The position numbers were made by a program, and so were the translations under genes. From NCBI GenBank assembly GCA_964234715.1, contig OZ174289.1: 64,000 bases of DNA, one strand, 5' to 3'. Positions 8,161 through 31,145 of this stretch are shown one piece after another. The DNA is from Podarcis melisellensis. Its lineage: Eukaryota. Under the pieces are notes generated by a model. The model searched no databases. It was not told the DNA's origin and worked only from the letters and a program-made list of their open reading frames with translations. Position 1 is the stretch's first letter. Each line of letters begins with the position of its first letter.

Positions 8161-8227
8161 ATGCTCTGCTTGCCGCTCCTCCTGCTCGCCAGCCTCTCTT
8201 GTTGCTCCAGCTCTGAAGTCAACCCTG
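8161..8227 (+). CDS. DDR2L: DDR2-like coding exon 1 (signal peptide [22 protein letters not shown])
   Basis: Acceptor tcttttctcag ends 8074; ATG with A at -3; hydrophobic leader ending VNP as in DDR2; donor g|gtagga. Confidence 0.85.
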
Positions 8228-29200: not shown

Positions 29201-31145
29201 TTTGGTGGGATTCTAAAAGAACCTCCCTTGATTATCTCGCCTTTCTCTTCATTTCTCAGTTGCCTCCACCTCCTGCTCATGGCTACCCAAATTGCCTCTG
29301 GCATGAAGTACTTGGCCTCCCTGAACTTTGTGCACCGGGACTTGGCCACACGCAACTGCTTGGTTGGGAACAATTACACCATTAAGATTGCCGATTTTGG
29401 CATGAGCAGGAACCTGTACAGTGGCGACTACTACCGGATCCAGGGCCGGGCTGTGCTGCCAATCCGCTGGATGGCCTGGGAAAGCATTCTGCTGGTAAGA
29501 GGCACAATATCTCTCTGCTGTTGTTGCAAATGTATTTAAGACAGGATTGGGGAGGAGCTTCAGGCATAGGGGGTGAACATGGCCCTCCAAGCCTCTCTGT
29601 CTGGCCCTTGGAATTCTCCCCTGCCCACACCCTTTACCAGCCCTGCTTTGAAGGTTTTCGCCTCATGTCTGCTGCCCTATGAACTTAACTTTGTTATATA
29701 CGACTGCAACTGTTTTGCTCCCTCAGAGGATCCTGGGATTTGTAGTGTAGTTGAGAATTATCTATTGGAGATCACTAGCGGGAGGCCCCACCTGAACAAC
29801 AATTCCCTGGCAGTCCTAGGGAGAGGTAATGGCTGCTAAACTGCATCTAAATCTCTTGATTAGATGCATCAAATCTGCAGCAGGGAGGTCTTGAGGAAAG
29901 CTAGTGACTGATGGGGGATCTGTACACTAATGCTATTTATGGTGTGACTTTGTTGCCTAGGTTTAGGGTTTGTGGCAGTGACAACTCCCAACCAAGGGCC
30001 AAAAGTAGCTCAGTCTTGATATAGGCTGTGCACACACCGTAGATGTAAAGCACATTTTCTCTCCAGAAGAATCCTAGGAACTATATTTTGTTAAGGGTGC
30101 TGAGAACTGTAGCTCTGTGAGGGGTAAACTACAGTTCCCAGGATTCTTAGTGGTGGAGAGGGATGTGCACACTGCCATGGTCTTCTGACACTGTGGCCTT
30201 CTTCTCTTTCCTCATAGGGCAAGTTCACCACGGCCAGCGACGTCTGGGCTTTTGGTGTGACATTATGGGAGATGTTCACACTGTGCAAGGAGCAGCCTTA
30301 CAGCTGGCTCTCTGATGAGCAGGTCATTGAGAACACGGGGGAGTTCTTCCGAGACCAAGGTCGACAGGTACCCAAAACAGATGTTCTGCATGGTGGGAAC
30401 CTGCACATCCTTTTGATGCTGGTGCTTTACATGCTGGGCTGAAGAGGGTGGGAAGCTGGTTTCTTCTCCTCTTGTATGTGCTGGTGGTGGTGTGTGAGCC
30501 TTGCTTGGTACCTTCTTCTCTCACTTCCTCAGTTTTTAATCACATCCAAGAGCTATTCCCTGGAGGAATGGCTCTGAGATCAGAGGGGGGAAATCAGTGT
30601 CTCCTCTTCTCCTGTGTGCCACCTCTTTCACTTCTTTTATTGGCTTCTGATCCACTCTGGAGGATGGGCTCCACAGCCAGAGGTTGGGTTGCTTAAGAGG
30701 CGAGGAAATCATTATTTCCTCTTCCTATGTGTGATGCTGTGATTGGTTCTGGATACTATTACCTCTTCCTGTTACTTCAGAATCACAGCCAGCTGCTGCT
30801 CACTGGAGGAAGAGCTCCAAGCCAAAGCCTATGAGTTCTACATTTATTTATGTAGGATAGAGATATATTTATACAAATTTAAACCAGTAAAACAGCAACA
30901 GTCCATTAAAGAGTAACTAGATGGGTAGCATCTTCAGCACAGCACAGAAATCTGTGGTTCCAAAATCCCTCGCCACCCTCACTCTTCTTTTCCTGCTCAC
31001 ACAGGTCTATCTGACTCAGCCGCCCCTGTGCCCCAACCCTCTGTTCTCCTTGATGATGAAATGCTGGAGCCGTGACATCAAAGATCGCCCAGCATTCGAG
31101 GCCATCCACCTGTTTCTGGTGGAGCAAATGGACGGTAGCATTTGA
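8161..31145 (+). CDS. DDR2L: Discoidin domain receptor tyrosine kinase, DDR2-like (probable third DDR paralog); join(8161..8227,<13433..13525,14140..14368,14989..15136,15682..15787,17199..17385,18026..18272,19524..19625,21084..21247,22868..23063,25145..25389,26465..26586,28035..28232,29260..29494,30218..30367,31005..31145), ~879 aa
   Basis: Signal peptide; discoidin domain ([29 protein letters not shown]); DS-like domain; TM ([20 protein letters not shown]); kinase motifs [30 protein letters not shown]. All visible introns are GT-AG and phases are consistent. Family assignment is firm; paralog identity is inferred. Confidence 0.93.
8790..9775 (+). mobile_element. CR1 LINE 3' fragment interrupted by the MITE at 9093-9599
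   Basis: CR1-like 3' sequence (gatggcttt..ggattggacaaattcatggagga|gctatcaatg) continues on both sides of the MITE; boundaries approximate. Confidence 0.7.
9093..9599. mobile_element. Tc1-like MITE with long TIRs, inserted in a CR1 fragment
   Basis: CAGGTGAAACTCGAAAAATTAGAATAT at both ends; TA TSD; left arm duplicated from 9228. Confidence 0.88.
10298..10557. mobile_element. Tc1/mariner MITE, related family
   Basis: CAGTGGTACCTCGGG...CCCGAGGTATGACTG, TA TSD. Confidence 0.85.
10631..10860. mobile_element. Tc1/mariner MITE (inverted copy of 487-712)
   Basis: Same TIRs and internal sequence in reverse; TA TSD. Confidence 0.9.
11588..11830 (+). mobile_element. tRNA-headed SINE (Squam3-like)
   Basis: Box A TGGTGTAGTGGT, box B GGTTC, (CTT)n tail. 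Confidence 0.8.
13077..13298 (+). mobile_element. tRNA-headed SINE (Squam3-like), truncated by the gap
   Basis: Near-identical to 11588-11830. Confidence 0.8.
13299..13432. other. Assembly gap (134 N) hiding a SINE tail and the acceptor of DDR coding exon 2
   Basis: Run of n. Confidence 0.99.
13433..13525 (+). CDS. DDR2L: DDR2-like coding exon 2 (5' end hidden in N gap): [31 protein letters not shown]
   Basis: Start of the discoidin domain; donor cg|gtgagc. Confidence 0.92.
14140..14368 (+). CDS. DDR2L: DDR2-like coding exon 3 (discoidin domain)
   Basis: EGDGAWCP...LVGTQGRH...KEFARAY; ctctcag|g ... cag|gtgggt. Confidence 0.95.
14989..15136 (+). CDS. DDR2L: DDR2-like coding exon 4 (end of discoidin domain)
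   Basis: [16 protein letters not shown]...[11 protein letters not shown]; g|gtaagg. Confidence 0.95.
15682..15787 (+). CDS. DDR2L: DDR2-like coding exon 5 (DS-like domain)
   Basis: [11 protein letters not shown]...YLNDSTYDG, with the conserved N-glycosylation sequon; ag|gtaaga. Confidence 0.93.
17199..17385 (+). CDS. DDR2L: DDR2-like coding exon 6
   Basis: [16 protein letters not shown]...WPGYDYVGW...RNFTSMK; aag|gtatgg. Confidence 0.95.
18026..18272 (+). CDS. DDR2L: DDR2-like coding exon 7
   Basis: [14 protein letters not shown]...[11 protein letters not shown]...[11 protein letters not shown]; g|gtgagc. Confidence 0.95.
18404..18751 (-). mobile_element. Sauria SINE
   Basis: Starts AAAGGTAAAGGACCCC (reverse of the ACCTTT tail); same body as the other two copies. 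Confidence 0.85.
19524..19625 (+). CDS. DDR2L: DDR2-like coding exon 8 (Ser/Thr-rich stalk; CAGCAG tandem acceptor, start 19524 or 19527)
   Basis: Pyrimidine tract + cagcag; open phase-1/phase-1 exon; strong donor t|gtaagt. Confidence 0.8.
21084..21247 (+). CDS. DDR2L: DDR2-like coding exon 9 (transmembrane helix)
   Basis: [30 protein letters not shown]; acg|gtatct. Confidence 0.92.
22868..23063 (+). CDS. DDR2L: DDR2-like coding exon 10 (cytosolic juxtamembrane, NPTY)
   Basis: [15 protein letters not shown]...[18 protein letters not shown]...KLPE; g|gtagga. Confidence 0.92.
23768..24048. mobile_element. hAT MITE, same family as 2358-2818
   Basis: 8-bp TSD CTCAAGAG; ~1.5 internal units. Confidence 0.88.
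24646..25123 (-). mobile_element. 5'-truncated L1-clade LINE, antisense to the DDR gene
   Basis: Reverse strand resembles the ORF2 ends of the other copies; ~16-bp TSD CCC(C/T)CTTTTTGTTGTT. Confidence 0.78.
25145..25389 (+). CDS. DDR2L: DDR2-like coding exon 11 (juxtamembrane + Gly-rich loop)
   Basis: [25 protein letters not shown]...[11 protein letters not shown]. Confidence 0.95.
26465..26586 (+). CDS. DDR2L: DDR2-like coding exon 12 (VAVK)
   Basis: VHLCEADG...LVAVKMLR; ag|gtgagc. Confidence 0.95.
28035..28232 (+). CDS. DDR2L: DDR2-like coding exon 13 (alphaC, hinge)
   Basis: [25 protein letters not shown]...[16 protein letters not shown]. Confidence 0.95.
28843..28893. repeat. (AAT)n microsatellite
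   Basis: Direct. Confidence 0.95.
29260..29494 (+). CDS. DDR2L: DDR2-like coding exon 14 (catalytic and activation loops)
   Basis: [12 protein letters not shown]...[29 protein letters not shown]. Confidence 0.96.
30218..30367 (+). CDS. DDR2L: DDR2-like coding exon 15
   Basis: [18 protein letters not shown]...[16 protein letters not shown]. Confidence 0.95.
31005..31145 (+). CDS. DDR2L: DDR2-like terminal coding exon 16
   Basis: [10 protein letters not shown]...[19 protein letters not shown]...GSI*. Confidence 0.94.
   Translation, partial: VYLTQPPLCPNPLFSLMMKCWSRDIKDRPAFEAIHLFLVEQMDGSI

Follow-up and report, generated by a model that had tools for sequence, protein, structure and literature searches.

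A stretch of 64,000 nucleotides from the lizard Podarcis melisellensis (GenBank assembly GCA_964234715.1, contig OZ174289.1), which we refer to as the window, carries on its plus strand a gene for a discoidin domain receptor (DDR), extending over positions 8161-31145. This gene is very probably the lacertid orthologue of Ddr2l, the third DDR paralogue of jawed vertebrates, which arose in the genome duplications of early vertebrates and has been lost from mammals, and its product would be a collagen-receptor kinase. Brunet, Volff and Schartl (Genome Biol Evol 2016) described a Ddr subfamily consisting of Ddr1, Ddr2 and Ddr2-like that derives from the 1R/2R duplications, with loss of Ddr2l in mammals and of Ddr1 in birds (PMC4898815), and a 2026 paper reports the same for zebrafish ddr2l, which has no shared synteny with DDR2 (PMC13283448). 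NCBI annotates Ddr2l in many lizards, and in dozens of reptiles, birds, amphibians and fishes. Ddr2l, its origin by duplication and its loss in mammals are already published and annotated, and the lizard copy is a known gene that was correctly read.

Phylogenetic placement of the gene

Full-length DDR proteins were collected by searching one DS-like exon (window 18020-18271) against representative proteins, and shark, turtle and crocodile proteins employed as further queries brought in sequences named DDR1, DDR2 and 'DDR2-like' from across the vertebrates. Identities were taken from tblastn of the fetched proteins against the window. Proteins of the 'DDR2-like' group are 88-90% identical in squamates, 83-85% in birds and turtles (873 aa), 78% in the coelacanth and 73% in lungfish, versus approximately 64% for true DDR2 of any vertebrate and 60-62% for DDR1. 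The closest annotated protein is the DDR2-like of Podarcis lilfordi (CAI5794252.1, 879 aa), which is approximately 99% identical.

A maximum-likelihood (ML) tree was calculated with IQ-TREE (LG+C20+F+G4, posterior mean site frequencies (PMSF); 49 rows, 873 columns), with invertebrate DDRs as the outgroup. The jawed-vertebrate proteins fall into three clades, DDR1 (100/100), DDR2 (100/100) and DDR2-like (100/99), and a quick tree of 81 rows agrees with this arrangement. The window sequence lies outside DDR2, in the squamate subclade of DDR2-like (100/99), with the tuatara as sister. When it was forced into DDR2, the log-likelihood (lnL) fell by 217 units and the placement was rejected by the approximately unbiased (AU) test under LG+G4 (p-AU 1e-33). 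A first-pass annotation, made from the sequence alone, had taken the gene for a DDR paralogue additional to DDR1 and DDR2, and both the tree and the AU test bear this out.

Each of the three clades holds cartilaginous fishes, ray-finned fishes, coelacanth, lungfish and tetrapods, roughly in species order; the DDR2-like clade comprises chimaera, sharks, ray, gar, sturgeon, coelacanth, lungfish, amphibians, turtles, birds, tuatara and squamates. Since cartilaginous fishes are present in all three, the split into three paralogues predates the jawed vertebrates. The branching order of the clades is weakly supported (69/30 for DDR1 with DDR2-like), and thus 'DDR2-like' should be taken as a name and not as a demonstrated sister relationship.

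NCBI models named 'DDR2-like' that cluster with the gecko representative come from geckos, Podarcis, Rhineura and Hemicordylus. No mammal is found among the 120 best matches to turtle DDR2-like, a list that reaches sharks at 66% identity, and this would agree with loss of the gene in mammals. The squamate clade and the mammal-free list are both in keeping with the first-pass view of a gene that squamates retain and the human lineage lacks. Crocodilians do not appear among these 120 matches either, with crocodilian DDR1 and DDR2 present in the database; a crocodilian Ddr2l may be hidden within the bird and turtle clusters formed at 90%, or crocodilians may lack the gene or an annotation of it.

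Separate paralogues could be located in relatives. In Podarcis, DDR2 (P. lilfordi and P. raffonei, approximately 853 aa) and DDR1 (P. raffonei and P. muralis, 938 aa) are both carried by chromosome-scale contigs other than that of DDR2-like, and a separate true DDR2 is also present in Anolis, Pogona and Phrynocephalus. For the closest relatives, this speaks against the translocated DDR2 that the first-pass annotation had named as a possible refutation of its reading.

The names given to DDR paralogues in databases are inconsistent. DDR1 orthologues of sharks and rays are called 'DDR2-like', the DDR2-like proteins of coelacanth, pigeon and bearded dragon carry the name 'DDR2' (the proteins concerned overall are P0014, P0151-P0162, P0221, P0256 and P0336), and an alligator protein named 'DDR2 isoform B' (P0184), which is nearest to DDR1, was left out of the tree.

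Gene structure and domain organization

The gene consists of 16 coding exons (Table 1), and its start codon is the first ATG downstream of an in-frame stop located 13 codons upstream. Splice sites were placed with the gecko orthologue as a guide, from a list of the donors and acceptors that keep the frame. Between exons 2 and 16 all 14 junctions could be tested, and each of them is a canonical GT-AG with a polypyrimidine tract; exons 2-16 join into 853 codons in which the only stop is the terminal one, the visible frame being without frameshift. Exon 1 contributes 22 signal-peptide codons and one further base, ending in phase 1 at the donor G/GTAGGA. The composition of the window is vertebrate-like (GC approximately 45%, CpG depleted).

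Pfam and PDB searches were made exon by exon, and a joined model, with X at an assembly gap, served only for alignment, trees, local BLAST and dN/dS. F5_F8_type_C (PF00754) matches exons 3-4 (14111-14380 and 14986-15141), DDR1-2_DS-like (PF21114) is covered over its whole 177-position profile by exons 5-7 (15666-15785, 17194-17388 and 18020-18271), and PK_Tyr_Ser-Thr (PF07714) matches the last four exons, 13-16. In the single-exon PDB searches human DDR2 came out best with DDR1 a close second, and neuropilins and Trk/MuSK kinases scored far lower. A hydrophobic stretch of 21 residues (model residues 421-441) is followed by approximately 144 residues up to the kinase, as read from the sequence. 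The predicted protein is thus a single-pass receptor tyrosine kinase of approximately 879 aa, built in the order signal peptide, discoidin domain, DS-like domain, short fast-evolving stalk, transmembrane helix, long juxtamembrane region and DDR-type kinase. The kinase has kept the motifs GEGQFG, VAVK, the alphaC Glu (DFLKEIKIM), the catalytic loop and the activation loop YSGDYY (YxxxYY). Both the count of 16 exons and the list of catalytic motifs in the first-pass annotation were correct according to the guided gene model and the alignment.

There is no substantial difference between this protein and known Ddr2l (zebrafish ddr2l; CAI5794252.1; Paroedura picta XP_077160931.1), which is the same gene in the same clade: the Podarcis protein has 879 aa, as compared to approximately 879 here, the gecko shares the downstream NOXA1-like neighbour, and what sets the window copy apart is the gap at exon 2. 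DDR2 (PDB 2WUH, 6FER) has the same domain order, central collagen pocket, catalytic motifs and YxxxYY as the window gene; it forms a separate clade, however, with identities of 63-67% in the discoidin domain, 73-75% in the kinase and 52-57% in the transmembrane segment. DDR1, also a separate clade with the same architecture and pocket residues, shows 55-61%, 66-71% and 67-71%, respectively. The stalk is unrelated to that of DDR2 (11-14% identity) and likewise to that of DDR1. The first-pass annotation had described the kinase as DDR2-like and the ectodomain as unlike both paralogues; this draws the contrast too sharply, every folded domain being only slightly nearer to DDR2 than to DDR1.

The transmembrane segment (residues 421-441) is nearer to DDR1 than to DDR2, which is the reverse of the situation in the ectodomain and the kinase.

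Assembly gap at exon 2

The window has a single gap, of 134 N, which hides the last part of intron 1 together with the acceptor site and the initial codons of exon 2. It ends within the exon: base 13433 is a third codon position and is followed by YPLGM. According to the alignment, one of the hidden codons specifies the first cysteine of the discoidin domain. With exon 1 ending in phase 1, the coding sequence lost in the gap has to measure 3k+1 bases, and the 879 aa of the Podarcis orthologue, being 22 + 4 + 853, would place approximately 4 residues, or about 10 bases, within the gap. Continuity and reading frame are thus likely to be preserved across it, as judged from these lengths. A dispersed repeat in intron 1 runs into the left flank of the gap, with copies of 86-88% identity at 11586-11802 and 56765-56974, and may plausibly have caused the assembly to break there. 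The description 'apparently intact' in the first-pass annotation is supported by the visible frame, splice sites and motifs, but does not extend to the start of exon 2, which lies in the gap.

Selection and splicing

For an estimate of dN/dS (the ratio of nonsynonymous to synonymous substitution rates), the codons of each exon in turn were threaded onto the loci of Paroedura picta and Rhea. Comparison with the gecko over 837 codons gave a dS of 0.89, a dN of 0.035 and a dN/dS of 0.039; with Rhea, dN was 0.083 and dS was saturated. The stalk exons evolve fastest, and in kinase exons 14-15 dN is 0. The gene is under strong purifying selection, the ratio of 0.04 standing opposite the value near 1 that the first-pass annotation had named as speaking against its reading.

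Contigs from sequencing runs were compared to window positions 14100-19700. Three small runs of one organism, from three studies, each contain one contig that joins exons 3-8 head to tail, and the joins correspond to the junctions of our model, allowing for 1-3 bases of slack in the alignment. In a DNA run whose sequence is identical to the window, the introns are present and colinear. The spliced contigs differ from the window at approximately 1% of exonic sites; of the 11 exonic differences listed, 10 are synonymous and fall at third positions, and the sole replacement is located in the stalk. The stretch searched is absent from the runs recorded as RNA. The three runs, which are presumed to be RNA, indicate a spliced transcript in a very close relative, not certainly in the species of the window. 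The first-pass annotation had proposed transcription as a check, and this is answered in part, by exons 3-8 spliced in the relative.

Collagen pocket and proposed mechanism

In the crystal structure of DDR2 with collagen, the central pocket is formed by Trp52, Thr56, Asp69, Arg105, Glu113 and the Cys73-Cys177 bridge (PMC2807035). All of these residues (W52, T56, D69, C73, R105, E113 and C177) are identical in the window protein and across the DDR2-like clade. The contacts at DDR2 positions 110, 112 and 175, which lie at the periphery and are thought to tune preference for collagen types, are T/K/T in tetrapod DDR2-like proteins, H/I or N/N in DDR2 and L or H/K/S in DDR1. The juxtamembrane tyrosine that aligns with the NSTY of DDR2 lies in an NPTY motif which is kept from sharks to lizards. 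Lys at position 112 and a juxtamembrane motif of the NPxY type are also found in mammalian DDR1.

The most likely function of the protein, to judge from its conserved parts, is that of a DDR-type receptor kinase activated by collagen. From the conserved pocket we infer that the discoidin domain would bind collagen. Activation would then proceed by slow autophosphorylation of the tyrosines of the activation loop (YSGDYY) and of the juxtamembrane region, and downstream signalling could involve adaptors with a phosphotyrosine-binding (PTB) domain docked on the clade-conserved NPTY. A further proposal, which we put forward as a tentative possibility that may well prove wrong, is that T110, K112 and T175 together with NPTY confer a distinct collagen-type specificity and direct coupling to PTB adaptors, such that Ddr2l would provide non-mammalian vertebrates with a third, non-redundant collagen-sensing pathway.

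Weighing of the assignment

Several points weigh against the assignment to an intact, collagen-binding Ddr2l. The acceptor and first codons of exon 2 lie inside the gap, so that full intactness in this assembly is only probable. The spliced contigs come from runs that are only guessed to be RNA, and from a close relative that is not certainly this species. The evidence for a separate DDR2 comes from relatives within Podarcis. The peripheral contacts T/K/T differ from those of both DDR1 and DDR2, so that ligand specificity may differ too. Finally, the literature searched yielded no biochemical data on any Ddr2l protein; full-text searches returned a handful of papers in which the gene is mentioned, none of them a functional study of it, in amniotes or otherwise, in line with the earlier remark that little functional work exists in amniotes.

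If the gene were a true DDR2 orthologue relocated beside NOXA1 in squamates, one could understand why single-exon PDB searches put human DDR2 just above DDR1, and why several orthologues have the plain database name 'DDR2'. This identity was rejected on the basis of the ML tree, the AU test (p 1e-33) and the separate DDR2 of Podarcis, and we give it next to no credence: identity to true DDR2 is approximately 64%, as compared to 83-99% for DDR2-like, and Pogona, Anolis and Phrynocephalus carry a separate true DDR2 as well. A duplicate of DDR1 or DDR2 specific to sauropsids or tetrapods, instead of an ancient paralogue from whole-genome duplication, could draw on the poorly supported clade order (69/30), but appears hardly credible in view of a DDR2-like clade that spans chimaera to squamates roughly in species-tree order, and of DDR1 and DDR2 clades that each hold cartilaginous fishes too.

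A third explanation concerns the state of the locus, which could be an incipient pseudogene, silent or in decay, with its lesion concealed by the gap. The unread start and acceptor of exon 2 leave room for such a lesion, and the stretch searched does not occur in any run recorded as RNA. Against decay stand the dN/dS of 0.04 over 837 codons and the 10 synonymous changes out of 11 recent differences, the intron-free contigs that join six exons in three studies, the annotated Podarcis orthologue of 879 aa at approximately 99% identity, and the conservation of all visible splice sites and of the catalytic and pocket residues. We thus consider a decaying copy very unlikely, and retain Ddr2l as the identity of the gene.

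Neighbouring genes and synteny

Downstream of DDR2-like lies a NOXA1-like gene (Table 1). Its first tetratricopeptide repeat (TPR) exon matches the NCF2 TPR in PDB (E 8e-10), and its SH3 domain, split over exons at 50512-50905, is recognized by Pfam as SH3_1 and has NADPH oxidase activator 1 (NOXA1, 7cfz) as its best PDB match (E 2.8e-8). A motif scan of the plus strand over 38-56 kb gave one SH3 only, as expected for NOXA1 rather than NCF2. The candidate PB1-like exon of NOXA1 at 49386-49727, a single open reading frame (ORF), had no Pfam PB1 match at E up to 0.1. An ENTPD (GDA1/CD39) gene follows on the minus strand, extending from about 54 kb to 61 kb or further, and its positions 54144-54288 and 55798-55899 match the Anolis sagrei ENTPD gene in blastn. 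The first-pass annotation had placed NOXA1 and an ENTPD gene next to the receptor, and the best PDB match of the SH3 domain and the GDA1/CD39 exon on the minus strand agree with this placement.

In the gecko Paroedura, a gene with TPR and SH3 lies 5.5 kb downstream of DDR2-like, and in Anolis sagrei (L004 20880-28209) the ENTPD gene lies 7.3 kb downstream. No NOXA1 exon match was found between DDR2-like and ENTPD in Anolis sagrei, unlike in the window and the gecko, and NOXA1 may have been lost or moved there. Outside squamates, synteny was compared in Rhea and Xenopus laevis only, and neither NOXA1 nor ENTPD occurs within 10 kb of DDR2-like in these two species. The neighbourhood that the first-pass annotation proposed to compare across vertebrates is thus recovered in squamates, through the NOXA1-like gene of the gecko and the ENTPD gene of Anolis sagrei, but not at this distance in Rhea or Xenopus laevis. 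The chromosomal neighbourhood of DDR2 differs from that of the window gene. In human, NOXA1-ENTPD8 is located at 9q34, DDR1 at 6p21 and DDR2 at 1q23, which belong to the framework of the major histocompatibility complex (MHC) paralogon; a literature search on MHC paralogous regions, 9q34 and DDRs returned nothing relevant.

A block at window 35170-35512, approximately 4 kb past the DDR2-like stop, is conserved at the same position with approximately 73% identity in Paroedura (L001 35778-36072) and Anolis sagrei (L004 23283-23613). The block may mark where a long 3' untranslated region ends, or be a conserved regulatory element; the ORF at 35104-35481 has no Pfam match, and neither does the ORF at 4307-4774.

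Long AAT/ATT-type microsatellites occur at 22400-22470 (intron 9) and 28850-28900 (intron 13), where they show as poly-N or poly-I ORFs. Positions 18400-18790 in intron 7 belong to a very high-copy interspersed repeat, also present at 51754-52117 and 59911-60255, whose summed contig depth reaches millions in the DNA run and which is abundant in the RNA-like runs too.

Table 1. Exons of the DDR2-like gene and other features located in the window
Feature	Position	Strand	Evidence or remark
Exon 1: ATG and signal peptide	8161-8227	+	Aligns from residue 1 of Podarcis DDR2-like
Dispersed repeat, intron 1, running into gap	13076-13298		Other copies in the window
Assembly gap	13299-13432		134 N
Exon 2, visible part: discoidin start (YPLGM...)	13433-13525	+	100% identical to gecko orthologue, 31 aa
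Exon 3: discoidin (F5/8 type C)	14140-14368	+	Pfam E 1.6e-10; PDB DDR2 E 2.4e-29; joined to exon 4 in spliced contigs
Exon 4: discoidin end	14989-15136	+	Pfam; guided junctions; spliced contigs
Exon 5: DS-like start	15682-15787	+	Pfam PF21114; guided junctions; spliced contigs
Exon 6: DS-like	17199-17385	+	Pfam PF21114 E 7.6e-29; spliced contigs
Exon 7: DS-like	18026-18272	+	Pfam PF21114 E 2.1e-32; spliced contigs
Exon 8: extracellular stalk, fastest-evolving part	19524-19625	+	dN 0.28; spliced contigs
Exon 9: stalk end, transmembrane helix, juxtamembrane start	21084-21247	+	Guided junctions, joined model
Exon 10: juxtamembrane with clade-conserved NPTY	22868-23063	+	Guided junctions, alignment
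Exon 11: juxtamembrane end, kinase glycine loop GEGQFG	25145-25389	+	Guided junctions
Exon 12: kinase N-lobe (VAVK)	26465-26586	+	Guided junctions
Exon 13: kinase alphaC and hinge	28035-28232	+	Pfam PK_Tyr_Ser-Thr
Exon 14: catalytic loop, activation loop YSGDYY	29260-29494	+	Pfam E 6.3e-30; PDB DDR2 kinase E 2.3e-44
Exon 15: kinase C-lobe	30218-30367	+	Pfam PK_Tyr_Ser-Thr
Exon 16: kinase end and stop (31143-31145)	31005-31145	+	Pfam PK_Tyr_Ser-Thr
NOXA1-like gene: first TPR exon 38607, TPR exon 44600-44827, SH3 exons 50512-50905	38607-50905	+	PDB, Pfam
ENTPD (GDA1/CD39) gene, extent approximate	54144-61059	-	Pfam PF01150 E 3.5e-16; PDB NTPDase1/2

Significance

As a discovery the lizard gene matters little, and the value that remains is modest. 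The inconsistent naming of DDR paralogues can mislead work that is based on orthology. The clade-specific collagen contacts and the NPTY motif provide a concrete hypothesis for collagen sensing outside mammals; if it is true, Ddr2l would not simply be redundant, and losing it would have had consequences for mammals.

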